Assembly (NCBI GenBank): GCA_002269645.1
Contig: NIVC01000644.1
Coordinates: 135,996-199,995, forward strand
Reading direction: 5' to 3'
DNA: 64,000 nucleotides
Source: Macrostomum lignano
Taxonomy: Eukaryota
Shown: positions 23,099 through 64,000 of the stretch, piece by piece
Numbering within the stretch: position 1 is the first letter of the stretch
How the letters are laid out: each line of letters opens with the position of its first letter
Notes under the pieces: generated by a model
Told to the model about the DNA's origin: nothing
The model's database searches: none
Seen by the model: the letters and a program-made list of their open reading frames with translations, nothing else
Translations under genes and position numbers: made by a program

Positions 23099-23129
23099 GG
23101 CTCTGAAAACGGTGTGATAATGGCGTGTG

Positions 23130-23416
23130 TGTTGAAGTTTGCTTCTTTTAATTAAGTATATTTTATCAGTTTGAACAAAAAGAAATACACAAGATGAAAA
23201 ATTGAGCAGTTTGGGGGGGGCACTTAAAGTATTAGCGTATTTGCGATATGAACTAACAACCATAGATATATCGGTACGATACTGTATTGAATATTTATTG
23301 AACTTTCTAGAAAGGGATACGCACAGCTATTTGCATTAACAATATTAATCAATATTATGTATCTGACAATTACTATATAAAGTACTAAAAGTACGAGCTA
23401 TATACTATAAACAACA
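23130..23416 (-). repeat. 3' LTR of the copia element, 287 bp
   Basis: Direct repeat of 27621-27907; no differences found by eye. Confidence 0.97.
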
Positions 23417-23541
23417 CTCCCACTTAATTGTCAGAAACTTATCATTGGAAGATTTAAGTTAATCGCGGTAGATTACTCAGTAGTCTCTGATATTAAAAAT
23501 GGATGACAATGACATTAGTTACTTCAGTTACTCCAGTTACT

Positions 23542-26500
23542 TCAATTCATATCCATACACTTAATACCAAGCATTGATCGCAGATTTTCAAACTGATGCC
23601 TGGGAATTGGCTTTGTTAGAATGTCCGCCAGCATTTCCTTTGTCGGACAGTATTCCAGTTTCACAGTACCAGCTTGAATAGCATCTCGAATAAAATGATA
23701 GCGGATGTCAATATGCTTTGTCCGCTTGTGTCGAATCGGATTTTTTGACATTGCAATGGCTCCTTGATTGTCTTCCTTAATTACAGTTGACCCAGTGATA
23801 TTGGCACCCAAATCACTTACAAGTCGACGAAGCCATATTGCCTCCTGTGTCGCAGACGCAAGGGCCATGTACTCAGCTTCTGTCGTTGACAACGCCACCG
23901 TGGTTTGCTTTTGACTTAACCATGTTACTGCTCCACCGGCCATAATGAAAACACTTCCAGTGACTGAGCGTCTGCTATCCAAGTCCGACGCCCAATCAGC
24001 GTCTGAGTAGCCAATGATCTCGTTACTTTCAGACTTCTCATATTTCAGAACGACGTCCGATGAGCCTTTCAGGTATCGAAGAATTCTCTTGGCAGCGGTG
24101 AGATGAGCCTCAGTTGGTTTGGAATTGAATTTCGATACTGCTCCCACTGCTTGAGCAATGTCTGGCCGTGTAGCGATCGCTGCGTACAATAGGCTGCCTA
24201 CAATTGATTGATAGGCCTTTGGATCCACGAATTTGCTGTAGCCATCGTTTTCAACGAGCTTGACGCTTGAATCCATTGGGGTTGTGGCTGGGTTTGCTTC
24301 CAACATTTTAAACTTCTTCAGTAGTTGCATAATGTATTGCTTCTGATGAAGTTGAAGAAATCGTCTCTCTGAGTCAATCACTATTGTCACTCCTAAACAG
24401 TAATGAAGCTCTCCCATATCTTTCATCTTGAATCGTCGAGTGAATTCCTCCTTGATACTCTGCATTTCATCCATAGTATCAGTAGCCATCACCAAGTCGT
24501 CAACATAAACCGCAATGATTGACATGTTTCCAAGTTTGCGAGTGAACACACATGGGTCTGCTCCACTTTCCTTGAATCCAATCGAGATTAGGTAATCACA
24601 GAGGGCCTTGTTCCAACACCGGGGTGATTGCTTTAGACCATATAGCGATCTTTTCAGCTTGCAGACTAAATTCTCTTCGTCGCATTTAACGTATCCGGGT
24701 GGTTGATCCATGAAGATTTCTTCTGTTAAATGTCCGTTTAGAAATGCAGTGACCACATCCATTTGATGAATGTGCATTTCTCGTTGAGTTGCGAATGCCA
24801 GTATAGTACGGATTGATGAGAATCTTACCACAGGAGAAAACGTCTCGTCATAATCCACTCCAGGTTGTTGAGAATACCCTTTGGCAACCAGGCGTCCTTT
24901 GAATCGTTCAATGTTTCTGCAGCTGTCATGCTTCACTTTGAATACCCACTTGCAGCCAACAGTCTTTCGTCCTTCTGGAAGAGGAACTAATTCCCACGTA
25001 TCATTTTCTATCAGAGAGTTGTATTCCGAGTCTGTTGCTTCTTTCCATTCCTTCGCATTGTCACAACTCCAAGCCTCGTCAATCGATCTGGGTTCCAAAA
25101 TCTCCATGGCTCGAAAAGCACGATGTTGTGGCTCTGTTGTACTTAGGCTAGCTACTTCGAAGTTCTCATTGTATTGAAAACGCTCTGGGGTTTTCCTTTG
25201 TCGCGTGGTCGTTGGCAGAATTTGTTGGATTTCAGTTTCAATTTCTTCATTCGGAGTTGTTCGGCTGTTGTGCTCGTCGAGGTTGACTTCCATATGTGAA
25301 TTTATCTTTTCATTGTTCTGCTGGAAATCATTCAACTTTCCGAAGTCTCCCTCATTGAAGATGACATCGTAACGAACAACTGTTTTCCTAGTTCTTTCGT
25401 CAAACAATCTGTAGCCCTTTTGATTGTCACTGTAGCCAACGAACCTTAGCTTGGTAGTCTTCTTATCAAGTTTTTGTCTCTCTACTGTAGGAATGTGAGC
25501 ATAAGCTACACAGCCAAACGTTCGAAGATGTGAGATGTTTGGCTTTCGTCCACACCATCTTTCGTAGGGTGTCATCATTGGCGCTACCGAGTTCGTCGGG
25601 ACTCTGTTGCGGATATACGCGGCTGTGTTGATGGCTTCTGCCCAATAAGCATTGCTAAGACCAGCATGAGTTATCATTGTTCTAGCAGATTCGATGAGAG
25701 TACGGTTCATTCTTTCAGCAACACCGTTCTGTTCTGGTGTATGGGCTACCGAAATTTCGTGTCGAATTCCTTTTGCAAGTAAAAACGCAGAAAATTCCTT
25801 GGACATGTACTCTCCTCCACCATCAGTTCGGAGAACTTTTATTGTTTTTTCAGTCTCATTTGTCACCTGCGCTTCGAATTCCTTAAACTTCTGGAAGACT
25901 TCAGACTTAGTCTTCAGAAAATAGACCTTCACAATGCGAGAGAAATCATCGATGAAAGTCGCAAAAAATCGATTCCCGCCAAACGACTGCGTCTGCATTG
26001 GTCCACAAATGTCACTGTGCACAAGTTGCAGTACTTCTGATGAGCGAATTTCTCCGACTGATTTGTGATTCTTTCGATGCGCCTTTCCTTCAACGCACGC
26101 TTCACAGAAATTCATATCACTCACAATGGAAGTGTCAGTACCCTCGACGTACCTTTTCTTGAATAGTTGTTCGAGTTGATTTCTGTGGAGATGTCCTAGA
26201 CGATGATGCCACAAATTGGCAGTTTCGAGCTCTGACTTTGTAGTCGTTACTGCAGCTGTAGCTAAGTTGTAATCTACATCACACTCAAGTTGATACAATC
26301 GATCAACTAGTGTTCCAAAGCCTACTAGCTTCCCTGTTTGGTTTCGAATCCAGCACCTAGTGTGACCAAACTGAATGACATTGTTCTTAAGTGTAGCCGC
26401 ACGTACACTGAACAGATTGCAGGCTAGTCTAGGTACGAAAAGTACAGATCCAAGAACTGCGTTAGAACGCTCACCACCAGGGAGTCTCGTGACGATGTTC

Positions 26501-27555
26501 ACTCGTCCAGTTCCGTAAGCTTGAACTGTTCGCCCGTCTCCGAGCCCTACATTTTCCGGTTCATCGAATTCAGTGTAGTCTTTTAGAGCATTCCTTTGAC
26601 AGGTCATATGTCTTGTCGCACCAGAGTCAATTATCCACCGTGCGGTTGTGTCCTGAGGACCAGTTTCTTCAGAGGTAAGAAATGTAGCGGCACTATCGGC
26701 TATCTCGTTGTCCAGGTTCGGATTCGAATGACTCGTACTTTCTGCAGCTTTAGCTTTATGCAGAGTCGATTTTGAGTTTTGCTGCCTGTTGCTCACGTTG
26801 AACCTGCACTCTCTACTGAAGTGTCCTTCCTTGCCACATGTGTAGCACTTAATTGGTCTGCGTCCCTTAAATTTGTCAACACGAAGAGCAGATTCCGAAT
26901 CACGGGATTCGTATTTCATAGTTTCACTTCGTTTCATTTCTTCATTAAGCAGTGCTTGTTGAACCGTCAGCAAAGTCAGCTCCTCTTCCTTTCGGGTCTC
27001 CAGAGCCGTAACCAGATGACTGTAGCTGTCAGGTAGACTGCTAAGAAGAATCACAACCTGGTCTTCGTCAGACACAGCAGCATTAATGGACGCCAGCTTG
27101 TCAGTTAACTCCTTCAGACAGCGAATGTGCTCCTGAACTGGAGTCCCATCAGTCATCTGCAGTCTAAATAGTTTTTTCTTCAAAAACAACTTGTTGGCAG
27201 TCGAGTCACGTTCGAAATGACCACATAAAATTTGCCACATCTGCCTCGGATCATCATCGCATGTAGTCACAAGGTAGATGTACTCACTGCTGAGAGACAG
27301 AACTATCATTGCTGCTGCTCGCTGTTGCTGTTCCTTGAATTCATTGCGTCGTGCTTCATTTGCGTCTTGCTGAAGAACATCTTCTCCGGTAGCTATGCCC
27401 CAGAGTCTTCTTGCGATTAAGCAATGTTTCATTTGGATTTTCCACGTCATCCAATTGTCCTTCGTGAGCTTCTCTATGTGCCATTTTTCTTCGCTTGCAG
27501 CCATAGCAACGTAACTGATCGACCGAGCGATCAAGTTTCCAGATGGCACGAACAA
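23542..27555 (-). CDS. Copia Gag-Pol polyprotein (Gag, CCHC knuckle, protease, integrase, RT, RNase H), 1337 aa, uninterrupted
   Basis: CYTCGKEGHFSREC; WIIDSGATRHMT; LWHHRLGH...CEAC; VHSDICGP, LRTDGGGEY, QNGVAERMNRT; YVDD; GYSDADWA; TKHIDIRYHF. Integrase precedes RT, the copia order. The true start is probably the MAASEEK Met. Confidence 0.98.
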   Translation of the reverse strand: MFVPSGNLIARSISYVAMAASEEKWHIEKLTKDNWMTWKIQMKHCLIARRLWGIATGEDVLQQDANEARRNEFKEQQQRAAAMIVLSLSSEYIYLVTTCDDDPRQMWQILCGHFERDSTANKLFLKKKLFRLQMTDGTPVQEHIRCLKELTDKLASINAAVSDEDQVVILLSSLPDSYSHLVTALETRKEEELTLLTVQQALLNEEMKRSETMKYESRDSESALRVDKFKGRRPIKCYTCGKEGHFSRECRFNVSNRQQNSKSTLHKAKAAESTSHSNPNLDNEIADSAATFLTSEETGPQDTTARWIIDSGATRHMTCQRNALKDYTEFDEPENVGLGDGRTVQAYGTGRVNIVTRLPGGERSNAVLGSVLFVPRLACNLFSVRAATLKNNVIQFGHTRCWIRNQTGKLVGFGTLVDRLYQLECDVDYNLATAAVTTTKSELETANLWHHRLGHLHRNQLEQLFKKRYVEGTDTSIVSDMNFCEACVEGKAHRKNHKSVGEIRSSEVLQLVHSDICGPMQTQSFGGNRFFATFIDDFSRIVKVYFLKTKSEVFQKFKEFEAQVTNETEKTIKVLRTDGGGEYMSKEFSAFLLAKGIRHEISVAHTPEQNGVAERMNRTLIESARTMITHAGLSNAYWAEAINTAAYIRNRVPTNSVAPMMTPYERWCGRKPNISHLRTFGCVAYAHIPTVERQKLDKKTTKLRFVGYSDNQKGYRLFDERTRKTVVRYDVIFNEGDFGKLNDFQQNNEKINSHMEVNLDEHNSRTTPNEEIETEIQQILPTTTRQRKTPERFQYNENFEVASLSTTEPQHRAFRAMEILEPRSIDEAWSCDNAKEWKEATDSEYNSLIENDTWELVPLPEGRKTVGCKWVFKVKHDSCRNIERFKGRLVAKGYSQQPGVDYDETFSPVVRFSSIRTILAFATQREMHIHQMDVVTAFLNGHLTEEIFMDQPPGYVKCDEENLVCKLKRSLYGLKQSPRCWNKALCDYLISIGFKESGADPCVFTRKLGNMSIIAVYVDDLVMATDTMDEMQSIKEEFTRRFKMKDMGELHYCLGVTIVIDSERRFLQLHQKQYIMQLLKKFKMLEANPATTPMDSSVKLVENDGYSKFVDPKAYQSIVGSLLYAAIATRPDIAQAVGAVSKFNSKPTEAHLTAAKRILRYLKGSSDVVLKYEKSESNEIIGYSDADWASDLDSRRSVTGSVFIMAGGAVTWLSQKQTTVALSTTEAEYMALASATQEAIWLRRLVSDLGANITGSTVIKEDNQGAIAMSKNPIRHKRTKHIDIRYHFIRDAIQAGTVKLEYCPTKEMLADILTKPIPRHQFENLRSMLGIKCMDMN

Positions 27556-27591
27556 CCAGATTACCAGAATGATCTAGTACATCGAAGTACT

Positions 27592-27620
27592 CGCAGTGGA
27601 AGCGTGCTGGGCCCATAACC
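27592..27620 (-). other. Primer-binding site complementary to the 5' half of initiator tRNA-Met
   Basis: The + strand CGCAGTGGAAGCGTGCTGGGCCCATAACC equals the D-arm to anticodon-stem sequence of metazoan tRNA-iMet as I recall it; it abuts the 5' LTR. Confidence 0.9.
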
Positions 27621-27907
27621 TGTTGAAGTTTGCTTCTTTTAATTAAGTATATTTTATCAGTTTGAACAAAAAGAAATACACAAGATGAAAAATTGAGCAG
27701 TTTGGGGGGGGCACTTAAAGTATTAGCGTATTTGCGATATGAACTAACAACCATAGATATATCGGTACGATACTGTATTGAATATTTATTGAACTTTCTA
27801 GAAAGGGATACGCACAGCTATTTGCATTAACAATATTAATCAATATTATGTATCTGACAATTACTATATAAAGTACTAAAAGTACGAGCTATATACTATA
27901 AACAACA
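27621..27907 (-). repeat. 5' LTR of the copia element, 287 bp
   Basis: Direct repeat of 23130-23416. Confidence 0.97.
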
Positions 27908-30169: not shown

Positions 30170-30680
30170 GAACCTAACCTAACCCTCACCTAAACCCTGA
30201 CACCCTTAACCTAAATTCTACAACCCTAACCTAACACCCTAACACCCTACCTTAAACCCAAACACCCTAACCTAAATCCAAACACCCTAACCTAAACCCA
30301 AACACTCTAACCTAAACCCAAACACCCTAACCTAAACCCAAACACTCTAACCTAAACCCAAACACCCTAACTTAAACCCAAACACCCTAGCCTAAATCCA
30401 AACACCCTAACCTAAACCCAAACACTCTAACCTAAACCCAAACACCCTAACCTAAATCCAAACACCCTAACCTAAACCCAAACACTCTAACCTAAACCCA
30501 AACACCCTAACCTAAATCCAAACACCCTAACCTAAACCCAAACGCCCTAAACTAAACCTAAACACCCTAACCTAGATCTAACACCCTCAACTTAAACCTA
30601 AGCACCCCAAGCTAAACTTTGACATCCTAACCTAAACCCAAACACCCTAACCTAAACCCTAACACCCTAACCTAAACCTC
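30170..30680. repeat. Telomere-like 20-bp repeat (CCCTAACCTAAACCCAAACA)
   Basis: CCCTAA cores in a 20-nt period, degenerate at the edges. Confidence 0.85.
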
Positions 30681-44508: not shown

Positions 44509-44998
44509 AGGCTATGGTCGGTGCTACTTCTCGTGCACCTCAGCGCACACCTGCACTGGCGATGGCACTGCCATGGTCAGCCGCGCTGGCCTGCCCAACC
44601 AGGACATGGAATTTGTCCAGTTCCATCCTACTGGCATCTATGGAGCGGGCTGCCTCATCACCGAGGGCTGCCGTGGCGAAGGCGGCTACTTGGTTAATAG
44701 CGAGGGCGAAAGGTTCATGGAGCGCTACGCTCCTGTTGCCAAGGACTTGGCCAGCCGCGACGTGGTGTCTCGTGCCATGACCATCGAGATTCGCGAGGGC
44801 CGCGGAGTTGGCAAGGACAAGGACCACATCTTCCTGCAGCTGCACCACCTGCCGCCTGAACAGCTGCGCAGCCGCCTGCCGGGCATCTCCGAGACCGCCC
44901 ACATCTTTGCCGGGGTGGACGTGACCCGGGAGCCGATCCCTGTGCTGCCCACTGTGCACTACAACATGGGCGGCGTGCCCACCAACTGGCAGGGCCAG
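44509..44998 (+). CDS. SDHA: SDHA exon 2
   Basis: Acceptor CCGCAG; completes ATGGYGR, then [46 protein letters not shown]; donor is GCGAGT. Confidence 0.95.
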
Positions 44999-45023
44999 GC
45001 GAGTTGCGCCCCATGATTATTCG

Positions 45024-45561
45024 AATAGCCAGTCTCATTAGATTGATAGCCAGTCTCATTAGATTGATAGCCAGTCTCATTAGATTCATAGCCAGTCTCA
45101 TTAGATTGATAGCCAGTCTCATTAGATTGATAGCCAGTCTCATTAGATTGATAGCCAGTCTCATTAGATTGATAGCCAGTCTCATTAGATTGATAGCCAG
45201 TCTCATTAGATTGATAGCCAGTCTCATTAGATTGATAGCCAGTCTCATTAGATTGATAGCCAGTCTCATTAGATTGATAGCCAGTCTCATTAGATTCATA
45301 GCCAGTCTCATTAGATTCATAGCTAGTCTCATTAGATTCATAGCCAGTCTCATTAGATTGATAACTAGTCTCATTAGATTGATAGCCAGTCTCATTAGAT
45401 TGATAGCCAGTCTCATTAGATTGATAACTAGTCTCATTAGATTGATAGCCAGTCTCATTAGATTGATAGCCAGTCTCATTAGATTGATAGCCAGTCTCAT
45501 TAGATTCATAGCCAGTCTCATTAGATTCATAGCCAGTCTCATTAGATTCATAGCCAGTCTC
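45024..45561. repeat. 21-bp minisatellite (ATTAGATTGATAGCCAGTCTC) filling SDHA intron 2
   Basis: About 25 copies occupying most of the 580-nt intron 44999-45578. Confidence 0.97.
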
Positions 45562-47574: not shown

Positions 47575-48420
47575 TGCGAAGCATACAGAAGACAGACTGG
47601 CAGACCGAGAGGCAGGGGCAGAAAGAGGACAAACGCTCTTGTTTACTTATTCTAAGCTCCTTTAGTAGACGCTGAAAGTTAAGAAATTAATTTTTTCAAA
47701 CTCCAGTATGTCCTCGCATGTTATTACTTTCCAGACAGAACGACCTCGAAGAGTCGCTCGGGGTAGCTCGCAGCTTGCCAGACAGAATGACCTCGAAGGT
47801 TTCATTGTTTTGCATGGTCTGCTGGCTGGCAATTGAATGCTATCCCTGGCTAAGCTACAGTCGGAGAAGGCTGGGAAAAAAGGAGTTATGGGAGAATAGA
47901 ATTGCCACTCTTGGTCCAGCTGAGCCGGAAATAGCTTAAACGGTTGCTTTGCGAAGAATTGTGCTCAAAAACGGTGAGGGGTTTGCTTAAAAAAACAACT
48001 TACAAACTTCATTTCCAATGTGTCTAGTGTCGTTTCCGATGGATGCGTCATTGTGCAGCGCATTTTGCACCTTGATGTAATACGACTACGAGATGAACGT
48101 GAACTTGCCCATCAGGTAAACGGCATGATTTACTGCACTAGATCGAAACTGTCTGTGAACCAACGTAGGCCGCTATCAAACCAAAAAGCAAATCAGTAGA
48201 TGGTTTTCAAAATCTACACTCAACGGATCTGGAGCCTGCCGATTTCTTTATTTTTCTGCAGCTGAAGAGCCGTTTTAAGACAAGGTCCGGTGAATTCTTT
48301 CCCAAGGTCTTTCGAGCCAAAGCTATTTTGATGCGACTGACGCCATCCATGCTCAAGCGGTGGAAGAAGCGAGTTGCTACATGTGACGACTATGTTAAGA
48401 AGTTTTATCCATGAGGGGCA
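47575..48420 (+). mobile_element. Decayed mariner-family DNA transposon remnant
   Basis: STDLEPADFFIFLQLK (about 48220-48267) resembles mariner SPDLAPxDFFLFxxLK; LKRWKKRV...DDYVKK (about 48353-48400) resembles the mariner C-terminus; a diverged second copy lies at 59.3-59.9 kb. Confidence 0.5.
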
Positions 48421-48904: not shown

Positions 48905-50219
48905 AAGAATGCGCCGCTTCAAAATGACACCAAAGCCCCCTTTTTGCTCTGGGTTTAAGTGTCAGAACTCCAGACACCCCGTGTACTTTTGCGAGATGAG
49001 TGCGGCAATTCAGGCTGCAGTCTGTGGGTTAACTATATCCTCATAGTTGCCCTTGCATGTAATAATATACATGCAAATACATGTGATATATTGCCGTAAA
49101 GCATATGTGTAGACTAGGCTCTCAGGCACCTGTTTGCGGGAGCTGGACCAAGTGCCCGCGGATGGCGCCATTGATCTCGCTCTTTGTGTCGTCCGCTCAC
49201 GTTCGACCCTGCCTGATGGATAGTTAAATTTCACTTGTGTCTGGCCGAGATTGCGGGTCCACTGCAGAGCTTGGATTAGCAGAGCCAAGCCGTGAAAATA
49301 TTCGTAATTATGAGCCTTTGCAGTGAGGACAACAAATCCTGCAGGAGTTTCCAAATCTTTCAACGGCTCCGATCCCCACTGAAGGGATTCAATCTTGAGG
49401 TTGTCTGTTCAAGCGGTGGAGCCAACGTCACTTGGGCTGATCCCCGCTAGCACCCCGTTTAACAACAACAAACAGCACACGCATAGCCTCGATCGGTACG
49501 CTTGTGACAGGTTCCTCAGACAGCTAGGCAGGTTAAAGGCTAGCCAAACTAACAACAATTCATTAAAATCCTTCATCTCATTAATGCAGAAATCGCTAAA
49601 TCTGAAACAGAACATACACAGAGTACTGATATACATGAAAAGCCCTTCAGAAATACATGTACTCTTGGCGTAAAGCTTTGTCAAGAGTTGGAAATTGTAA
49701 ATTAAGAAATCCGATTAGTTTCGTTTCCTGAAATAAAATAGCACAAACAATTAATAATTTCTTGGAAATTTGCTTGAATAACCACTGCCACACTTTAGGA
49801 ATCGAAAGGGTTCGTTATTGAGTTCTGGCTTAATTTATTTCCTTCCTCCATCGCATAATAGTTACGTTGAAGGCTGCGCGCTTCCAAAAAGCGACTGGAT
49901 GCGAATTATCGGGGAGAAAAAAGAAACGTTTGTTCACTTTTACCGAATCAAGGAAAATAATTGTCATAGTTTGTCTGGTCATGTTTCGTATCATCAGCCT
50001 CGCAGAATTAAATTCTGACTTTAACCGTCGGCACCTGAAAGAAAAGAGTAGAAAGGGTCAGCATGCACGAAGTATTTCTAAAATGCTAATAAATAAACTA
50101 GTCACTTGTTGTGACCTGTCTCTCCGGGCACTTCATCAGTTAGTAGTTTCGCTTTGCAATCAGATTCAAAATATTTTCAACACTCACCCATAAATGTAAT
50201 TCCATAGGGCCTACCTACC

Positions 50220-53200
50220 TTAAGGCTGATGCTTGCCCTGCGGCTTTCCTTTGCTGGGTCCCTTCAGATGCTGCTTTTTGGCAGCTCTCCCGCCGGACTT
50301 TTTCTCGCCATTTCCGCCGGCCTTGTGTACTTGAACTTTTTTCTTCTTATTAGATTCGTTTCTCTCGGAGCCGCCTACAATCATCCTCTTCTTGTTCTTC
50401 TCTGAAACAGTCAAACTTGTTGATGAATTGCATGCTAGTGTGTCAGAAATGTCGCCATTGTGAGTCATGGCGCTGATACTCACTTCTAAACTGAGGCGGC
50501 AGGGAGCTCTCGGAGCCGCCTACAATCATCCTCTTCTTGTTCTTCTCTGAAACAGTCAAACTTGTTGATGAATTGCATGCTAAAGTGTGTCAGAAATGTC
50601 GCCATTGTGAGTCATGGCGCTGATACTCACTTCTAAACTGAGGCGGTAGGGAGCTCTCGGAGCCGCCTACAATCATCCTCTTCTTGTTCTTCTCTGAAAC
50701 AGTCAAACTTGTTGATGAATTGCATGCTAAAGTGTGTCAGAAATGTCGCCATTGTGAGTCATGGCGCTGATACTCACTTCTGAACTGAGGCGGTAGGGAG
50801 CTCTCGGAGCCGCCTACAATCATCCTCTTCTTGTTCTTCTCTGAAACAGTCAAACTTGTTGATGAATTGCATGCTAGTGTGTCAGAAATGTCGCCATTGT
50901 GAGTCATGGCGCTGATACTCACTTCTAAACTGAGGCGGCAGGGAGCTCTCGGAGCCGCCTACAATCATCCTCTTCTTGTTCTTCTCTGAAACAGTCAAAC
51001 TTGTTGATGAATTGCATGCTAGTGTGTCAGAAATGTCGCCATTGTGAGTCATGGCGCTGATACTCACTTCTAAACTGAGGCGGCAGGGAGCTCTCGGAGC
51101 CGCCTACAATCATCCTCTTCTTGTTCTTCTCTGAAACAGTCAAACTTGTTGATGAATTGCATGCTATTGTGTCAGAAATGTCGCCATTGTGAGTCATGGC
51201 GCTGATACTCACTTCTAAACTGAGGCGGCAGGGAGCTCTCGGAGCCGCCTACAATCATCCTCTTCTTGTTCTTCTCTGAAACAGTCAAACTTGTTGATGA
51301 ATTGCATGCTAAAGTGTGTCAGAAATGTCGCCATTGTGAGTCATGGCGCTGATACTCACTTCTAAACTGAGGCGGCAGGGAGCTCTCGGAGCCGCCTACA
51401 ATCATCCTCTTCTTGTTCTTCTCTGAAACAGTCAAACTTGTTGATGAATTGCATGCTAGTGTGTCAGAAATGTCGCCATTGTGAGTCATGGCGCTGATAC
51501 TCACTTCTAAACTGAGGCGGCAGGGAGCTCTCGGAGCCGCCTACAATCATCCTCTTCTTGTTCTTCTCTGAAACAGTCAAACTTGTTGATGAATTGCATG
51601 CTATTGTGTCAGAAATGTCGCCATTGTGAGTCATGGCGCTGATACTCACTTCTAAACTGAGGCGGCAGGGAGCTCTCGGAGCCGCCTACAATCATCCTCT
51701 TCTTGTTCTTCTCTGAAACAGTCAAACTTGTTGATGAATTGCATGCTAAAGTGTGTCAGAAATGTCGCCATTGTGAGTCATGGCGCTGATACTCACTTCT
51801 AAACTGAGGCGGTAGGGAGCTCTCGGAGCCGCCTACAATCATCCTCTTCTTGTTCTTCTCTGAAACAGTCAAACTTGTTGATGAATTGCATGCTAGTGTG
51901 TCAGAAATGTCGCCATTGTGAGTCATGGCGCTGATACTCACTTCTAAACTGAGGCGGCAGGGAGCTCTCGGAGCCGCCTACAATCATCCTCTTCTTGTTC
52001 TTCTCTGAAACAGTCAAACTTGTTGATGAATTGCATGCTAGTGTGTCAGAAATGTCGCCATTGTGAGTCATGGCGCTGATACTCACTTCTAAACTGAGGC
52101 GGCAGGGAGCTCTCGGAGCCGCCTACAATCATCCTCTTCTTGTTCTTCTCTGAAACAGTCAAACTTGTTGATGAATTGCATGCTAGTGTGTCAGAAATGT
52201 CGCCATTGTGAGTCATGGCGCTGATACTCACTTCTAAACTGAGGCGGCAGGGAGCTCTCGGAGCCGCCTACAATCATCCTCTTCTTGTTCTTCTCTGAAA
52301 CAGTCAAACTTGTTGATGAATTGCATGCTAAAGTGTGTCAGAAATGTCGCCATTGTGAGTCATGGCGCTGATACTCACTTCTAAACTGAGGCGGTAGGGA
52401 GCTCTCGGAGCCGCCTACAATCATCCTCTTCTTGTTCTTCTCTGAAACAGTCAAACTTGTTGATGAATTGCATGCTAGTGTGTCAGAAATGTCGCCATTG
52501 TGAGTCATGGCGCTGATACTCACTTCTAAACTGAGGCGGCAGGGAGCTCTCGGAGCCGCCTACAATCATCCTCTTCTTGTTCTTCTCTGAAACAGTCAAA
52601 CTTGTTGATCAATTTCATGCTAAAGTGTGTCAGAAATGTCGCCATTGTGAGTCATGGCGCTGATACTCACTTCTAAACTGAGGCGGTAGGGAGCTCTCGG
52701 AGCCGCCTACAATCATCCTCTTGTTCTTCTCTGAAACAGTCAAACTTCTTGATCAATTTCATGCTAAAGTGTGTCAGAAATGTCGCCATTGTGAGTCATG
52801 GCGCTGATACTCACTTCTGAACTGAGGCGGCAGGGAGCTCTCGGAGCCGCCTACAATCATCCTCTTCTTGTTCTTCTCTGAAACAGTCAAACTTCTTGAT
52901 AAATTTCATGCTAAAGTGTGTCAGAAATGTCGCCATTGTGAGTCGTGGCGCTGATACTCACTTCTAAACTGAGGCGGCAGGGAGCTCTCGGAGCCGCCTA
53001 CAATCATCCTCTTCTTGTTCTTCTCTGAAACAGTCAAACTTCTTGATCAATTTCATGCTAAAGTGTGTCAGAAATGTCGCCATTGTGAGTCATGGCGCTG
53101 ATACTCACTTCTAAACTGAGGCGGTAGGGAGCTCTCGGAGCCGCCTACAATCATCCTTTCTTGTTCTTCTCTGAAACAGTCAAACTTCTTGATCAATTTC

Positions 53201-56200
53201 ATGCTAAAGTGTGTCAGAAATGTCGCCATTGTGAGTCATGGCTGATACTCACTTCTGAACTGAGGCGGTAGGGAGCTCTCGGAGCCGCCTACAATCATCC
53301 TCTTCTTGTTCTTCTCTGAAACAGTCAAACTTCTTGATCAATTTCATGCTAAAGTGTGTCAGAAATGTCGCCATTGTGAGTCATGGCGCTGATACTCACT
53401 TCTGAACTGAGGCGGTAGGGAGCTCTCGGAGCGCCTACAATCATCCTCTTCTTGTTCTTCTCTGAAACAGTCAAACTTCTTGATCAATTTCATGCTAAAG
53501 TGTGTCAGAAATGTCGCCATTGTGAGTCATGGCGCTGATACTCACTTCTAAACTGAGGCGGTAGGGAGCTCTCGGAGCCGCCTACAATCATCCTGTTCTT
53601 GTTCTTCTCTGAAACAGTCAAACTTCTTGATCAATTTCATGCTAAAGTGTGTCAGAAATGTCGCCATTGTGAGTCATGGCGCTGATACTCACTTCTGAAC
53701 TGAGGCGGTAGGGAGCTCTCGGAGCCGCCTACAATCATCCTCTTCTTGTTCTTCTCTGAAACAGTCAAACTTCTTGATCAATTTCATGCTAAAGTGTGTC
53801 AGAAATGTCGCCATTGTGAGTCATGGCGCTGATACTCACTTCTGAACTGAGGCGGTAGGGAGCTCTCGGAGCCGCCTACAATCATCCTCTTCTTGTTCTT
53901 CTCTGAAACAGTCAAACTTCTTGATAAATTTCATGCTAAAGTGTGTCAGAAATGTCGCCATTGTGAGTCATGGCGCTGATACTCACTTCTAAACTGAGGC
54001 GGCAGGGAGCTCTCGGAGCCGCCTACAATCATCCTCTTCTTGTTCTTCTCTGAAACAGTCAAACTTCTTGATCAATTGCATGCTAAAGTGTGTCAGAAAT
54101 GTCGCCATTGTGAGTCATGGCGCTGATACTCACTTCTGAACTGAGGCGGCAGGGAGCTCTCGGAGTCGCCTACAATCATCCTCTTCTTGTTCTTCTCTGA
54201 AACAGTCAAACTTCTTGACAATTGCATGCTAAAGTGTGTCAGAAATGTCGCCATTGTGAGTCGTGGCGCTGATACTCACTTCTAAACTGAGGCGGCAGGG
54301 AGCTCTCGGAGCCGCCTACAATCATCCTTTTCTTATTCTTCTCTGAAACAGTCAAACTTGTTGATCAATTTCATGCTAAAGTGTGTCAGAAATGTCGCCA
54401 TTGTGAGTCATGGCGCTGATACTCACTTCTGAACTGAGGCGGCAGGGAGCTCTCGGAGCCGCCTACAATCATCCTCTTCTTGTTCTTCTCTGAAACAGTC
54501 AAACTTCTTGATCAATTTCATGCTAAAGTGTGTCAGAAATGTCGCCATTGTGAGTCATGGCGCTGATACTCACTTCTGAACTGAGGCGGTAGGGAGCTCT
54601 CGGAGCCGCCTACAATCATCCTCTTCTTGTTCTTCTCTGAAACAGTCAAACTTCTTGATCAATTTCATGCTAAAGTGTGTCAGAAATGTCGCCATTGTGA
54701 GTCATGGCGCTGATACTCACTTCTAAACTGAGGCGGCAGGGAGCTCTCGGAGCCGCCTACAATCATCCTCTTCTTGTTCTTCTCTGAAACAGTCAAACTT
54801 CTTGATCAATTGCATGCTAAAGTGTGTCAGAAATGTCGCCATTGTGAGTCATGGCGCTGATACTCACTTCTGAACTGAGGCGGCAGGGAGCTCTCGGAGT
54901 CGCCTACAATCATCCTCTTCTTGTTCTTCTCTGAAACAGTCAAACTTCTTGAACAATTGCATGCTAAAGTGTGTCAGAAATGTCGCCATTGTGAGTCGTG
55001 GCGCTGATACTCACTTCTGAACTGAGGCGGCAGGGAGCTCTCGGAGCCGCCTACAATCATCCTCTTCTTGTTCTTCTCTGAAACAGTCAAACTTCTTGAT
55101 CAATTTCATGCTAAAGTGTGTCAGAAATGTCGCCATTGTGAGTCATGGCGCTGATACTCACTTCTGAACTGAGGCGGCAGGGAGCTCTCGGAGCCGCCTA
55201 CAATCATCCTCTTCTTGTTCTTCTCTGAAACAGTCAAACTTCTTGAACAATTGCATGCTAAAGTGTGTCAGAAATGTCGCCATTGTGAGTCGTGGCGCTG
55301 ATACTCACTTCTAAACTGAGGCGGCAGGGAGCTCTCGGAGCCGCCTACAATCATCCTCTTCTTGTTCTTCTCTGAAACAGTCAAACTTCTTGATCAATTT
55401 CATGCTAAAGTGTGTCAGAAATGTCGCCATTGTGAGTCATGGCGCTGATACTCACTTCTAAACTGAGGCGGCAGGGAGCTCTCGGAGCCGCCTACAATCA
55501 TCCTCTTCTTGTTCTTCTCTGAAACAGTCAAACTTGTTGATCAATTTCATGCTAAAGTGTGTCAGAAATGTCGCCATTGTGAGTCATGGCGCTGATACTC
55601 ACTTCTAAACTGAGGCGGCAGGGAGCTCTCGGAGCCGCCTACAATCATCCTCTTCTTGTTCTTCTCTGAAACAGTCAAACTTGTTGATCAATTTCATGCT
55701 AAAGTGTGTCAGAAATGTCGCCATTGTGAGTCATGGCGCTGATACTCACTTCTAAACTGAGGCGTTAGGGAGCTCTCGGAGCCGCCTACAATCATCCTCT
55801 TGTTCTTCTCTGAAACAGTCAAACTTCTTGATCAATTTCATGCTAAAGTGTGTCAGAAATGTCGCCATTGTGAGTCATGGCGCTGATACTTACTTCTGAA
55901 CTGAGGCGGCAGGGAGCTCTCGGAGCCGCCTACAATCATCCTCTTCTTGTTCTTCTCTGAAACAGTCAAACTTCTTGATAAATTTCATGCTAAAGTGTGT
56001 CAGAAATGTCGCCATTGTGAGTCGTGCCGCTGATACTCACTTCTAAACTGAGGCGGCAGGGAGCTCTCGGAGCCGCCTACAATCATCCTCTTCTTGTTCT
56101 TCTCTGAAACAGTCAAACTTCTTGATCAATTTCATGCTAAAGTGTGTCAGAAATGTCGCCATGTCCCATTAGATTAGTGGCCTTACATAACCTTTGCGTT

Positions 56201-56783
56201 TTGAATGTAGTTTTGCGCTTTTCTTTCAGCCTATAAATGGCGCTTCGAGCGTGTTGAATGGTTGTTTTTTGTGACATATTTGTTGCATTTACCTTTTAGG
56301 AAGTCTTTTGAGGTTTCATCTCGGCTGGTTTTGAGCTGTTGCAGAACTGAAGCGTTTCAATTATTCCGCTGTTATTAGGACAGAGTACCCAGTTTCATCT
56401 TTAATAGTACGAGCTAAGCAGTGGAAAACCCGTTACTCACTTCGACACTTCCTCCTCCATGCCTCTCGTCACCTTCTTCACCTGTAGAAGGCTCTTCTTC
56501 TTCTTCCTCTTCTTCCTCTTCTGGAAAAAGTTCCTCGTGGTCATCATCAGACTCTGTAATGTTGCGGGTTTCAAAGGAGGTCCTTCGAGTGTACGGTAAT
56601 CAAGTGTTGCTATGCAAGCACAATATTAGTTACTCTGTTTGCTACATAGAGTAGTCAGTCAAGCCAAGCCTGCTTATACTCACCTGATCCTGGAACTGGT
56701 CTGGCTTGGCAGCGAGTGCCAACCAGAAGCAAAACGAGCAGCAACAAGCTGTTCACTGCAGCTGCTCTGCCCTTCAGCGGCAT
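50220..56783 (-). CDS. Predicted secreted multi-copy peptide precursor (about 960 aa) encoded by a tandem exon-intron array
   Basis: Exon 1 56783-56684 (MPLKGRAAAVNSLLLLVLLLVGTRCQARPVPGS, signal-peptide-like); exon 2 56553-56441 (acidic, SDDDHEELFPE10...SVE); exon 3 56335-56293 (LKTSRDETSKDFLK); 39 repeat exons from 56103-56041 down to 50546-50484; terminal exon 50401-50220 (Lys-rich, ends in TAA). All junctions are GT-AG and phase-compatible, except that two repeat exons lack 1 nt. No transcript evidence is available here. Confidence 0.7.
50365..56161. repeat. 145-147-bp tandem array, about 40 units; each unit is one 63-nt exon plus one 82-84-nt intron on the - strand
   Basis: The unit read on the - strand: GTGAGTATCAGC...GTTTGACTGTTTCAG, then AGAAGAACAAGAAGAGGATGATTGTAGGCGGCTCCGAGAGCTCCCTGCCGCCTCAGTTTAGAA, then GTGAGT. 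Confidence 0.97.
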
Positions 56784-56927
56784 TCTCTTGCTTGACCAAA
56801 TAAAAAGAATAGCCTGCGGTTGTTGATTGTTCAGCGACAAAGTGCGAACTTGCACAATATTCTCCACAGCAAGCTTGACAAGCGTGTGTCTGGAAATCGG
56901 AGAAGCTCGCGGACTGGGGCGGCAGTA

Positions 56928-56935
56928 TATTTATA
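56928..56935 (-). promoter_or_regulatory. Candidate TATA box (TATAAATA) of the peptide-precursor gene
   Basis: About 145 nt upstream of the ATG at 56783, with no other ATG seen between them on the - strand. Confidence 0.55.
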
Positions 56936-56943
56936 GCAGTATA

Positions 56944-57045
56944 GTGGACCTGACCCTGGAGCCAATCCCTGTGCTGCCCACTGTGCACTACGACATGCGT
57001 GCCCACCAACTGGCAGGGCCAGACGAGTTGCGCTCGATAATTATT
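56944..57045 (+). pseudogene. SDHA: Duplicated 3' end of SDHA exon 2 plus start of intron 2
   Basis: Aligns to 44915-45030 with several substitutions, a 5-nt deletion in the MGG codons and the donor changed from GC to AC; continues into the same 21-bp satellite. Confidence 0.9.
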
Positions 57046-59235
57046 CGAATAGCCAGTCTCATTAGATTGATAGCCATTCTCATTAGATTGATAGTCATTC
57101 TCATTAGATTGATAGCCAGTCTCATTAGATTGATAGCCAGTCTCATTAGATTGATAGCCAGTCTCATTAGATTGATAGCCAGTCTCATTAGATTGATAGC
57201 CAGTCTCATTAGATTGATAGCCAGTCTCATTAGATTGATAGCCAGTCTCATTAGATTCATAGCCAGTCTCATTAGATTGATAGCCAGTCTCATTAGATTG
57301 ATAGCCAGTCTCAGTCTCATTAGATTGATAGCCAGTCTCATTAGATTGATAGCCAGTCTCATTAGATTGATAGCCAGTCTCATTACATAAGATTGATAGC
57401 CAGTCTCATTAGATAAGATTGATAGCCAGTCTCATTAGATAAGATTGATAGCCAGTCTCATTAGATTGATAGCCAGTCTCATTAGATTGATAGCCAGTCT
57501 CATTAGATAAGATTGATAGCCAGTCTTATTAGATAAGATTGATAGCCAGTCTCATTAGATAAGATTGATAGCCAGTCTCATTAGATTGATAGCCAGTCTC
57601 ATTAGATTGATAGCCAGTCTCATTAGATAAGATTGATAGCCAGTCTTATTAGATAAGATTGATAGCCAGTCTCATTAGATAAGATTGATAGCCAGTCTCA
57701 TTAGATAGGATTGATAGCTAGTCTCATTAGATTGATAGCCAGTCTCATTAGATTGATAGCCAGTCTCATTAGATTGATAGTCAGTCTCATTAGATTGATA
57801 GCCAGTCTCATTAGATTGATAGCCAGTCTCATTAGATTGATAGTCAGTCTCATTAGATTGATAGCCAGTCTCATTAGATTGATAGCCAGTCTCATTAGAT
57901 TGATAGCCAGTCTCATTAGATTCATAGCCAGTCTCATTAGATTGATAGCCAGTCTCATTAGATTGATAGCCAGTCTCATTAGATTGATAGCCAGTCTCAT
58001 TAGATTGATAGCCAGTCTCATTAGATTGATAGCCAGTCTCATGAGATAAGATTGATAGCCAGTCTCATTACATTAGTTTGATAGCCAGTTTCATTAGATA
58101 AGATTGATAGCCAGTCTCATTACATTAGTTTGATAGCCAGTTTCATTAGATAAGATTGATAGCCAGTCTCATTACATTAGTTTGATAGCCAGTCTCATTA
58201 GATTGATAGCCAGTCTCATTAGATTGATAGCCAGTCTCATTAGATTGATAGCCAGTCTCATTAGATTGATAGCCAGTCTCATTAGATTGATAGCCAGTCT
58301 CATTAGATTGATAGCCAGTCTCATTAGATTGATAGCCAGTCTCATTAGATTGATAGCCAGTCTCATTAGATTGATAGCCAGTCTCATTAGATTGATAGCC
58401 AGTCTCATGAGATAAGATTGATAGCCAGTCTCATTACATTAGTTTGATAGCCAGTTTCATTAGATAAGATTGATAGCCAGTCTCATTACATTAGTTTGAT
58501 AGCCAGTCTCATTAGATTGATAGCCAGTCTCATTAGATTGATAGCCAGTCTCATTAGATTGATAGCCAGTCTCATTAGATTGATAGCCAGTCTCATTAGA
58601 TTGATAGCCAGTCTCATTAGATTGATAGCCAGTCTCATTAGATTGATAGCCAGTCTCATTAGATTGATAGCCAGTCTCATTAGATTGATAGCCAGTCTCA
58701 TTAGATTGATAGCCAGTCTCATTAGATTGATAGCCAGTCTCATTAGATTGATAGCCAGTCTCATTAGATTGATAGCCAGTCTCATTAGATTGATAGCCAG
58801 TCTCATTAGATTGATAGCCAGTCTCATTAGATTGATAGCCAGTCTCATTAGATTGATAGCCAGTCTCATTAGATTGGTAGCCAGTCTCATTAGATTGATA
58901 GCCAGTCTCATTAGATTGATAGCCAGTCTCATTAGATTGATAGCCAGTCTCATTAGATTGATAGCCAGTCTCATTAGATTGATAGCCAGTCTCATTAGAT
59001 TGATAGCCAGTCTCATTAGATTGATAGCCAGTCTCATTAGATTGATAGCCAGTCTCATTAGATTGATAGCCAGTCTCATTAGATTGATAGCCAGTCTCAT
59101 TAGATTGATAGCCAGTCTCAGTCTCATTAGATTGATAGCCAGTCTCATTAGATTGATAGCCAGTCTCATTAGATTGATAGCCAGTCTCATTAGATTGATA
59201 GTCAGTCTCATTAGATTCAAAGCCAGTCACATCAG
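57045..59235. repeat. Expanded 21-bp satellite (ATTAGATTGATAGCCAGTCTC), about 2.2 kb, with 26-bp variant blocks
   Basis: Same unit as SDHA intron 2; 5-nt insertion variants cluster at about 57390-57710 and 58040-58490. Confidence 0.97.
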
Positions 59236-59309
59236 ATTACATCACATCGGAAGAAGCAGTCGAGATATGTGGGGGCGTTGCAGACTGCTGAATGTTCTCC
59301 AGTAATTTT

Positions 59310-59880
59310 TGCCAATGCGAAGCACAAACAGACTGGCGGACAGAGGGCAGACGCTATTATTTATTATTTACCCTTCTAGACTCCTTAAGTAGACGCTGAA
59401 ACGTTAAATTTTAAAATTTTCTAACTTCAGTATGTCGTCGCATGGTATAAATTTATCGACAATAATCTTGAGTCGCTTGGCAAATGGCTCGTAGCTGGCT
59501 GTCCAGACAGAATGACCTCGAAGGTTTCATTGTTTTGCATAGTCTGCTGTCTGGGCAATTGAACGCCAACCCTTGCTATACGCTCGTAAAGCAACAATGT
59601 CGGGAAGGCTTGGAGAGAGGAGTAATATGGGAGGAGAGAATTGCCACGTCAACTCCAAACTCTAAAAAAACCAAATTTCAACTACGATGCGCCCTGCGTC
59701 ATTTCCAATGGATGCGTTAATTGATTTCTGCAACGCATTGAATGCGATGAACGCGAAATTGCCTATCAGGTTAGTGTCGAGCAATCCTTTTACAATATCG
59801 CTTTGAGTCAATTCACGATCCGCACTCGAGAGATCTCGAGCCAGCCGATTTCTTTCTTATTTCCTCAGCTGAAGAGCCAT
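59310..59880 (+). mobile_element. Second diverged copy of the mariner-like remnant
   Basis: Shares AGTAGACGCTGAAA, CCAGACAGAATGACCTCGAAGGTTTCATTGTTTTGCAT, GAATTGCCAC and CAGCTGAAGAGCC with 47575-48270; DLEPAD/FFLFPQLK is recoverable with one indel. Confidence 0.5.
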
Positions 59881-62380: not shown

Positions 62381-64000
62381 CCTCTACGCGACGAACCAAA
62401 AAATGCGTCACACCCTTTGCCGACGGCTGGCTGGCACGATTTCGTGCCAAGTGCATGAGTGTCAGAATTTCTACCCCCGTTCCAGACGGCAGCTAGCTCC
62501 ACAAGTATACCCGTATGTAACAAAGCCGCTTAACCAAAAGATAATTTGTCTATGGCTGGGGACCAAATGCTATGGCTGCATGTCTTTCATTCATGAGAAA
62601 ACCTTACAGGGAAATATGGAAAGGGCACTATTTTCGGCCATAGATTTTTATTGAAATCACTGTCGTGCTCATAATAGTTCTGCCAAGGACCTGCTTCAGA
62701 AATACAGAAACAGTCTTATTATAAAATTGGATCCTCTGTCTACCCAAAGCACCAAGCATTTCGCTCCTGAGAATCATTACATGGCGTTAGACTTTGACGG
62801 AGACTCGGAGTGAGCTGGTTCACTGCTGATGATGAGTCAATTGACGGATCCAAAGTTGAAAATCCCCATAGTGACCAAGAAGAAGGGCAGGATGAGTCAC
62901 TTGTAGAGAAACATGGCATCTTGTTGAAGATGGCGCTGATGCCAGCCAGCACCTCTGCTGAGTTCCTCGGAGTACCAGGAGTCAGGCCCGATTTGCAGCT
63001 TCCTGAGATCGCCGACGGAAACGAGGTGATTTTATCAAGCTGTACGAGGGCTGAGCAAATAGTTTCAGATTTCAGAATCTGATTTTGTCAGATTTTGTCA
63101 GCCCTCTCAACTATGCACATCCGGAAACTTATTGCTCAGCCCTCGTATTTGACGGACGGGTTGATGGAGAACATCAAGAACTGGACAACACGCAAAGGTT
63201 TGGAAGACCTATGAGGATAACTTTGACGGTGGAGCAGTCGCCAAATTTTGTGCTGAACTGGAAGGACTGCACGGTTAATGAAGTAAGAAAATTGATCGGA
63301 ATTGTTTTGCTGATGGGACTGGACAAGAAGCCTGAAATATCGAGCTATTGGTCGCAAGATCCGGCTTATCACTGTGCATTTCTTGCTGAGCCTTGTTCTC
63401 TTCCTAGAGACAGGTTCAAGCAGATCTTGTCCTGTTTTCGCTTTTACGATTGCACTGAGGCTCTGCACGGGGGTCCCTTGGCTAAGACGCAGCCTTTTTC
63501 TGCAACAGGCTAAGCGCTGTGCAGCAACAACTATGCCTCGTCAGCGGCTCTCGATTGACGAAAGTCTCGTGCTGTACAAGGGAAGACTGTTGTTCAAGCA
63601 GTACATCCCAACGAAGAGCAGTAAGTACGGAATCAAGATGTACTGCCTTTGTGAGTCCGAACATGACCTACCTGTGGAATTTTGAAATCCATACATCAAC
63701 TGAAGCCAACCAATTGTTCGTGATGGACTGGGCTGTCAAAATTTGTCCATGAGTGAGAGAGTTGTGGCTGAGTTGTGCCGCAATTTGCTTTACCTAGGCT
63801 ACCATATTTTCACAGACAGTTGGTTCACTTCGCACAGACTTGCTACGTGGCTGCTGCAACGGAATGTTCTTCTCACTGACACAGTGCGCAAAAACCGCGG
63901 CATCCCAAACCTGCTGCAGGCTGTAAATCTGCAGCCAACTTCTTCCCATTGCACGCTCTGGAAATGTGCTTGCCTGCAAGTTTGTTGACAGGAAACAGAG
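62381..64000 (+). mobile_element. Decayed piggyBac element (PGBD-like DDD transposase pseudogene), runs off the window end
   Basis: WKDCTVNEVRKLIGIVLLMGL...YWS...RDRFKQILSCFRF; LSIDESLVLYKGRLLFKQYIPTKSSKYGIKMYCLCES; YHIFTDSWFTS...TVRKNR, split over three frames. TTAA followed by CCTC at 62377-62384 is a possible left end (uncertain). Confidence 0.85.

Follow-up and report, generated by a model that had tools for sequence, protein, structure and literature searches.

In the flatworm Macrostomum lignano, a 147-bp tandem repeat of 5.8 kb very probably forms the body of a genuine gene, in which each repeat unit would supply one exon and one intron to the transcript of a secreted, strongly basic protein. 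The array lies in a stretch of 64,000 nucleotides (here called the window), which matches positions 135,996-199,995 of contig NIVC01000644.1 (assembly GCA_002269645.1, Mlig_3_7) at 100% identity and reaches the contig end; the gene itself spans about 185,829-192,930 of that contig on the minus strand. All other coordinates given below are window positions. In our reading, the product is a disordered polycation that a gland would secrete and that would stay largely intact; we put the probability of this reading, the real gene included, at roughly 0.5. A complete 7-kb gene would then be concealed in what any repeat masker would call satellite, and it appears to be unannotated in its own assembly. 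M. lignano serves as a model for adhesion, regeneration and reproduction, and similar secreted repeat proteins may be overlooked systematically in it.

A tandem array of exon-intron units

An earlier note on this DNA had described the satellite as a series of exon-intron units with a GTGAGT donor, introns of 82-84 nt and 63-nt phase-1 exons. It had also placed unique exons in compatible phases on either side, together with a TATA box and an AATAAA at 49839-49834. Tandem Repeats Finder (TRF) and a dissection of the individual units confirmed the repeat structure, and the flanking exons held up equally well. The junctions 56684/56553, 56441/56335 and 56293/56103 are all of the GT...AG type with phases 1, 0 and 1, and the frame of the ATG at 56783 enters the repeats. 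The parts of the gene are as follows (a slash within a sequence marks a splice junction or a cleavage site).

56928-56935, minus strand: TATA box TATAAATA, about 30-55 nt upstream of the starts of the paralogue models described below
56684-56783, minus strand: coding part of exon 1, ATG at 56783, ending in phase 1 and followed by GTGAGT; predicted signal peptide MPLKGRAAAVNSLLLLVLLLVGTRCQA/RPVPGS
56441-56553, minus strand: exon 2, 113 nt, acidic region ESDDDHEELFPEEEEEEEEEEPSTGEEGDERHGGGSVE; AG/GT borders and phase checked
56293-56335, minus strand: exon 3, 43 nt, linker LKTSRDETSKDFLK, ending in phase 1; borders and phase checked
50362-56162, minus strand: 147-bp tandem array; TRF gives 39.7 copies with 97% matches and a second period of 437 bp
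50220-50401, minus strand: terminal coding exon, a 40th, partial unit followed by a Lys-rich tail ending ...SERNESNKKKKVQVHKAGGNGEKKSGGRAAKKQHLKGPSKGKPQGKHQP; stop codon TAA at 50222-50220
49834-49839, minus strand: AATAAA polyadenylation signal, about 380 nt past the stop codon

The array holds 39 complete units on the minus strand, each made of a 63-nt phase-1 exon and an 82-84-nt intron and opening after CTGTTTCAG. The first repeat exon occupies 56103-56041 and the last full unit begins at 50546. Exon length is nearly constant (63 nt in 35 units, 60 nt in two and 62 nt in two). The 60-nt exons, in the units from 55809 and 52730, have lost one AAG codon and keep the frame, whereas the 62-nt exons, in the units from 53461 and 53170, each carry a 1-nt deletion that shifts it. 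Introns run from GTGAGT to TTTCAG; the donor is GTGAGT in 38 of the 39 units and GTAAGT in the other, and the pair of splice sites is intact in all 39. Repeat exons are symmetric, 37 of the 39 being 63 or 60 nt long with phase 1 at both ends, and the junction between one repeat and the next reads AGAA/AGAAGAAC. At the far end, the first 40 nt of the terminal exon are identical to a repeat exon and are followed by 47 further open codons before the TAA.

A donor-like site stands directly after this stop codon (TAA/GGTAGGT), and a good acceptor (…CTTTTCTTTCAG) lies 180 nt downstream. The interval 50036-50218 on the minus strand may be an intron of the 3' untranslated region; if it is removed, an exon junction would come to lie near the stop codon.

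Evidence for splicing and coding

When the 147-nt (49-codon) unit is read without splicing, every frame on both strands contains at least one stop per unit. Read-through translation of the unspliced unit is therefore ruled out, and an open frame requires removal of the 82-84-nt intervals. Among the unspliced open reading frames (ORFs) near the array, none resembled a called gene. Once the intervals are removed, a single frame is open and reads KKNKKRMIVGGSESSLPPQFR, while the two other spliced frames contain stops, in agreement with the proposal that only one of the three frames is open across all intact units.

The pattern of substitution also distinguishes the frames. Seven distinct substitutions occur among the repeat exons, and four of these are synonymous in the proposed frame, where 21% would be expected (binomial p=0.04); the corresponding counts in the other two spliced frames are 0/7 and 1/7. 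Both of the commonest exon variants, CTG/CTA for Leu and TTT/TTC for Phe (13 of 39 units each), are synonymous. The donor of the repeat units, GTGAGTAT, is identical to that used by the neighbouring SDHA gene.

Four M. lignano models in UniProt (A0A1I8IUW5, A0A1I8JK32, A0A1I8JLP8 and A0A1I8JIW0, referred to here as P0001 and P0006-P0008) are spliced at the same junctions as those described here. The shared junctions read ...VRK/EKNKKRMIVGG... and ...PPQFR/KKNKKRM..., ...PPQFRKKNKKRMIVGG..., and the models also have the same signal peptide, acidic region and linker motif. All four break off inside the repeats without a stop codon, and P0006 and P0007 differ by exactly one repeat unit. P0001, P0006 and P0007 begin at one position, homologous to about 56880 and tens of bases downstream of the TATA box, which looks like a transcript 5' end. 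These models would count as independent support for the exon-intron reading, short of proof of expression.

The predicted product and its relatives

With both frameshifted exons skipped, or with the two deletions taken as assembly errors, the predicted product has 920 aa, an isoelectric point of 11.5 and a net charge of +180. It is rich in Lys (18%), Ser (13%), Gly (10%), Arg (9%) and Pro (9%), and Cys, Trp and Tyr are absent after the signal peptide. The signal peptide itself (MPLKGRAAAVNSLLLLVLLLVGTRCQA/RP) combines a basic n-region, a nine-residue Leu/Val core (LLLLVLLLV in exon 1, over which hydropathy peaks at 3.9) and small residues at positions -3 and -1, from which we infer that the product is secreted. 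No Pfam family matched the product, and a phmmer search of the PDB with two repeat units returned nothing at E≤10.

Two other ideas about the unit were dropped. Complementary segments at the 5' end of the intron (GTGAGT...ACTCAC and CGCCAT...ATGGCG) had raised the possibility of a structured RNA, but the repeat unit has a fold z-score of -0.67, and there was no Rfam or tRNA match within the window. Descent of the repeat from the R/IVGG activation site of a trypsin-like protease was likewise rejected, there being no match to Pfam Trypsin and none in the PDB by phmmer at E≤10.

Homologues were sought among 5.8 billion clustered proteins and 1.84 billion cluster representatives, and in both collections relatives were found only in M. 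lignano. The closest comparison, with P0001 (E=1e-33), shows 71% amino acid identity over exon 1 and identical repeat units. The relatives form an uncharacterised family of Lys-rich secreted repeat proteins whose members include A0A1I8IUW5, A0A1I8JLP8, A0A1I8JIW0, A0A1I8ITX3 and A0A1I8JLA8, and the similarity covers the signal peptide, the repeat unit and the C-terminal tail. The acidic region is also present in P0001 and P0008, the linker motif RDE.S..SKD[IF][QL]K is common to the paralogues, and the junction K/EKNKKRM is identical in P0006. Close paralogues carry, in addition, degenerate basic units of the forms GRRKSDGKNPKVVPPARKKLERK and VHSLPRIHPSRKVGGSRKSAPPVRK.

A more divergent branch (P0003-P0005 and P0009) consists of long, low-complexity proteins rich in Lys and Gly. 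Here a single unit, KAPQVIVGGSESSLAPQFRKKNRK, stands among several degenerate KSVPKPGSSxASLPPxKPKK units, and all four proteins combine a VIVGGSESSLAPQFRKKNRK unit with a KHKAGGxGxKKxGG tail. The tail of our terminal exon is homologous to KKKRIQKHKAGGSGVKKTGG of P0005 and P0009 (KHKAGGSGVKKTGG vs VHKAGGNGEKKSGG), and in P0009 this C-terminal module has itself been expanded as (GGSGVKKx)n. What is conserved throughout the family is GGSESSL[P/A]PQF-RKKN[K/R]K, that is, the C-terminal half of the peptide proposed in the earlier note plus the basic spacer. Judged by these alignments, the protein belongs to a secreted, Lys-rich, low-complexity family restricted to M. lignano, with different modules amplified in different members.

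One match outside the species was judged to be due to chance. In the dinoflagellate Symbiodinium natans, the protein CAE7229251.1 (P0010, with relatives P0011) has three copies of M[VS]IGGD[ED]SSLPPEYR separated by His-rich spacers; the motif bears a striking resemblance to the flatworm unit MIVGGSESSLPPQFR, and the protein matches P0001 at E=4e-6. That value counts one 15-residue motif twice because both proteins are repetitive, and the rest of the protein is unrelated. By our own estimate with BLOSUM62, one unit alone reaches about 29 bits, a level at which thousands of chance matches are expected in 2.4e11 residues.

Two frameshifted units at the centre of the array

The claim of about 39 intact peptide units needs to be corrected. 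Only 37 of the 39 units are in frame; an identical 21-mer is encoded by 32 of these 37 and variants of it by the remaining five. The two units that fall out of frame are listed below.

53400-53461, minus strand: exon of unit 19, 62 nt, with a 1-nt deletion (GGCGGC to GGCGC) that breaks the frame as assembled
53109-53170, minus strand: exon of unit 21, 62 nt, with a 1-nt deletion (AAGAAGAGG to AAGAAAGG) that causes the second frameshift

The whole array has four private indels, of which three lie in neighbouring units (19, 20 and 21) that form its very middle. Given this position, the indels in units 19-21 are more likely to be assembly errors than signs of decay, because reads are least well anchored and polishing is least effective in the middle of an array, and the homogenisation expected from unequal crossing-over is strongest there. 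Omission of both 62-nt exons restores the frame.

Evolution of the array

Mean pairwise identity between units is 96.7%, and the homogenised units include the introns. The array starts 59 nt inside intron 3, stops 40 nt inside the terminal exon and is divided into two domains that differ in their intron variants.

52587-56103, minus strand: proximal domain, units 1-24, with intron variants ...GAAATTGATCAAG...
50402-52586, minus strand: distal domain, units 25-39, with intron variant ...GCAATTCATCAAC... and a 145/147-bp higher-order pattern

The second TRF period of 437 bp is due to this distal higher-order pattern. Within the proximal domain, the haplotypes of units 1-3 reappear at units 22-24, the in-frame 3-nt deletion included. 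Unequal crossing-over or gene conversion of whole exon-intron units would have created the array and would keep it uniform, and the sub-domains, the 145/147 pattern and the re-duplicated block of three units are the traces expected of such processes. The same features support the proposal that copy number is set by duplication of whole exon-intron units.

Comparison with known systems

An architecture of this kind is already known from secreted gland proteins of flatworms, of which the present gene would be a compact, extreme case by analogy of structure. Every architectural trait that was compared agrees with this class: one exon per protein repeat within a genomic repeat that contains the intron, homogenised introns, symmetric exons and a signal peptide encoded by its own 5' exon. 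In the polymorphic mucins of Schistosoma mansoni (SmPoMuc), a signal-peptide exon is followed by up to about 20 tandem genomic repeats of 1 kb with one 27-bp exon each. These repeats are more than 93% identical, introns included, through concerted evolution, and they impede assembly and annotation. Both systems thus concern a secreted flatworm protein with a separate signal-peptide exon and one short symmetric exon per homogenised genomic repeat. In contrast, the unit here is 147 bp with a 63-nt exon and 39 copies, as against about 1 kb, 27 bp and at most 20 copies with microsatellite spacers in SmPoMuc, and the repeat is polybasic rather than a Ser/Thr/Pro mucin repeat. SmPoMuc also has 13 further exons for a C-terminal domain, and the two show no sequence similarity.

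A second parallel is Sm10.3/MEG-4, reported to be a secreted oesophageal-gland protein encoded by tandemly repeated 81-base exons, with exon-skipping variants. As in our gene, short tandem exons each encode one protein repeat, a signal peptide is present and exon symmetry permits skipping. Unlike our predicted product, Sm10.3/MEG-4 has far fewer repeats and is a sticky, O-glycosylated protein rather than a polycation; the two sequences show no similarity. Micro-exon genes (MEGs) typically have exons of 6-36 bp and long introns of up to 5 kb. With 63-nt exons and 82-84-nt introns, the present gene falls outside the strict definition of that class, in which most of the coding sequence lies in exons of 6-36 bp separated by long introns. 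Beyond flatworms, the spider flagelliform silk gene and Coccidioides SOWgp are likewise reported to be built of genomic exon-plus-intron repeats whose introns are homogenised at least as strongly as the exons; these come from unrelated organisms, have far larger units and serve structural fibre or cell-wall functions.

Within the species itself, the adhesive protein Mlig-ap1 invites comparison, being two-thirds Gly/Arg/Lys-rich repeats in a multidomain protein of 5,000+ aa. It too is secreted, strongly positive and of low complexity, and short reads assemble it poorly. Mlig-ap1 was not retrieved by searches with the window protein or with P0009; a link through the Gly/Lys-rich relatives was dropped, as the P0009 search gave only its own cluster.

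Multi-copy peptide precursors include the FMRFamide-type precursors, cnidarian RFamide, pro-TRH, yeast alpha-factor and insect apidaecin. In the Xenopus caerulein genes each small exon carries one peptide, whereas elsewhere the copies nearly always lie in one exon. Our gene shares with such precursors a layout in which a signal peptide and an acidic stretch precede a long series of identical short peptides set off by basic residues. The precursors usually have maturation signals, for example a Gly for amidation, and spacers that are short or acidic, in contrast to the polybasic seven-residue spacer seen here, and no homology to multi-copy peptide precursors was found.

The repeated exon-intron route to secreted repeat proteins, seen in SmPoMuc and MEG-4 of parasitic schistosomes, would hereby be extended to a free-living, early-branching flatworm. 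This suggests that the mechanism is either old or easily reinvented in flatworms.

An intact polycation or a processed precursor

In the reading that we favour, a gland cell would release the product as a mostly uncut, disordered polycation. Once outside, the protein would attach to polyanions (glycans, surfaces or other secretions, for example), as has been proposed for the Gly/Arg/Lys-rich parts of Mlig-ap1. The copy number in the mRNA could vary by exon skipping, because all repeat exons are symmetric and have identical splice sites; the sole hint of such variation is the one-unit difference between P0006 and P0007.

Several observations weigh against this reading. As assembled, the ORF ends at residue 489, after 18 units, owing to the deletion in unit 19. 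Diversity in the exons (0.029) is similar to that in the introns (0.037), which is the expected outcome of unit-wide homogenisation, and the signal of selection therefore rests on seven substitutions. The UniProt models are the output of an automated pipeline and some of them extend upstream of the TATA box, so that they do not prove transcription. The annotated proteome of the gene's own assembly, Mlig_3_7, yielded no protein that carries the repeat. This absence could reflect repeat masking, which the earlier note had expected to hide the gene, or repeat collapse or the difficulty of assembly, but it also fits weak or no expression. That the product stays intact is argued from its relatives and from analogous systems, and a processed polyprotein would look exactly like this, with KKR and RKK sites at regular intervals on either side of a conserved, uncharged 14-mer.

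Some of these points would also fit a locus that makes no functional protein. The array might be a non-coding satellite with coincidental exon-like features, for a single 147-bp unit with an open 63-nt stretch, a GT and an AG could plausibly arise by chance and be multiplied by repetition, and the unit has neither significant RNA structure nor an Rfam match. Coincidence is very improbable, however, in view of the unique, phase-matched flanking exons with their start, signal peptide, stop and poly(A) signal, the end of the array inside an exon that stays open for 47 more codons, the junctions shared with the paralogue models and the frame-specific pattern of substitution. Decay deserves more weight, although we still consider it unlikely. 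Here a minisatellite-type expansion of the unit would have run away in a non-functional copy, the frameshifts would be real, and the locus would yield either nothing or a truncated 18-unit product prone to nonsense-mediated decay. The frame does break at unit 19 as assembled, exons and introns are about equally diverse, and the annotated proteome has no protein from this locus. Tandem repeats make up 44.7% of the window, so that expansions are commonplace, and M. lignano is a recent polyploid with redundant copies. Yet 36 of the 37 other exons show no disabling change, all 39 pairs of splice sites are intact and the exon substitutions are biased towards synonymous ones. The clustering of private indels at the array centre, moreover, would point to assembly error, and skipping of both 62-nt exons restores the frame.

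If the gene is real, the main alternative to an intact polycation is the multi-copy peptide precursor that the earlier note had proposed, and we regard this as possible but the less probable. Cleavage by a prohormone convertase (PC)-type enzyme at KKR/M and within F-RKK, followed by carboxypeptidase trimming, would release about 37 copies of the non-amidated 14-mer MIVGGSESSLPPQF. This peptide could have any of several roles: it might be a strictly neuronal neuropeptide, a narrower case that we think improbable, or more broadly a pheromone, a seminal peptide or a defence peptide made in a gland. Much of the proposed prohormone layout stands, namely the signal peptide, the acidic pro-region, the multibasic sites that recur at regular intervals and place a canonical K-R ahead of each copy, and the conserved core. 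Every in-frame unit reads KKR/MIVGGSESSLPPQF/RKK with an uncharged 14-mer, the same 21-mer recurs in 32 of the 37, and the variants that are common among the exons are synonymous. The product has no Cys and no folded domain. Furthermore, GGSESSL[P/A]PQF followed by RKKN is the best-conserved element in all relatives, even in those that are only about 35% identical elsewhere, and conservation of a peptide C-terminus together with its cleavage site is typical of bioactive peptides.

Other features count against a precursor. Phe directly precedes Arg, with no Gly for amidation, although a C-terminal Gly is a common rather than an obligatory signal of neuropeptide maturation. The basic spacer takes up one-third of each unit, far beyond what cleavage needs, and its RKKN[K/R]K is conserved as well as the 'peptide' is. 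The N-terminal cleavage site is missing in the divergent relatives P0003-P0005 (KAPQ/VIVGG), and the Lys/Gly-rich relatives look structural and would be shredded if every KK or KR were cut. KKNKKR lacks the P4 Arg of the furin motif, so that cleavage would depend on a convertase of the regulated pathway being present in the appropriate cells. No described peptide family, Pfam family or paper matches, and a literature search found no paper containing the peptide strings or the UniProt accessions. Finally, the known flatworm genes of this architecture encode intact repeat proteins secreted by glands. We therefore rank an intact polycation above a peptide precursor.

Should the gene nevertheless be a lineage-specific 'peptide factory', a tentative prospect, each translation would yield about 37 copies of MIVGGSESSLPPQF under two levels of dose control, heritably through unequal crossing-over of the 147-bp unit and per transcript through exon skipping. 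It would then be the most compact and highest-copy case of one peptide per exon, and a new flatworm signalling, pheromone or seminal peptide. Whether a 100-kDa polycation or a 37-copy peptide precursor, the product would be a good candidate for an adhesive, prostate, cement or rhabdite gland secretion, and both RNA interference and in situ hybridisation are routine in M. lignano.

Genomic neighbourhood

The upstream flank of the repeat gene is a duplicated piece of its neighbour SDHA. A segment at 44915-45561, made up of the last part of an SDHA exon and a 21-bp minisatellite (ATAGCCAGTCTCATTAGATTG) in the intron that follows, has been duplicated 12 kb away at 56944-59238. The duplicate, 90% identical over 683 bp, adjoins the TATA box of the repeat gene, and its minisatellite has grown from 25 copies at the source to about 100. 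A further duplicate pair is formed by 59335-59647 and 47617-47908. Upstream translations of P0002 and P0008 (…AIGSG…) suggest that this SDHA fragment also lies upstream of the paralogues. The SDHA intron that bears the minisatellite (44998/45579, plus strand) appears to use a GC donor, CAG/GCGAGT, with a normal CAG acceptor; no other splice choice keeps …NWQGQ/AITYDAQKG… in frame.

Tandem repeats account for 44.7% of the 64 kb. They comprise over 20 distinct mini- and microsatellite arrays whose periods range from 4 to 74 bp, and several of these extend over 1-4 kb. Among the arrays of the window, that of 147 bp alone has a long period, and it alone can be read as spliced coding sequence. About 25 degenerate telomere-like copies of ACCCTAACCTAAACCCAAAC form an interstitial array at 30173-30678.

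An intronless, full-length Mago nashi gene is found at 2124-2582 on the plus strand. Three contigs of GCA_002269645.1 (NIVC01000644.1, NIVC01000800.1 and NIVC01000645.1) carry genes for one and the same protein, with flanks that are about 95-96% identical, and this triplicate is a local view of the hidden polyploidy of M. lignano.

The window also holds mobile elements. An intact Copia-type long terminal repeat (LTR) retrotransposon at 23130-27907 on the minus strand has an uninterrupted ORF of 1337 aa (23542-27555) for gag, protease, integrase and reverse transcriptase. Its 287-bp LTRs (23130-23416 and 27621-27907) are 100% identical, which points to a very recent insertion, and the element either directly precedes a rhodopsin-family seven-transmembrane receptor ORF at 21956-23263 or sits within its 5' end. 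Near the contig end, a fragment of a PiggyBac-type transposase (Pfam DDE_Tnp_1_7, E=3e-13) lies at 63085-63513 on the plus strand.

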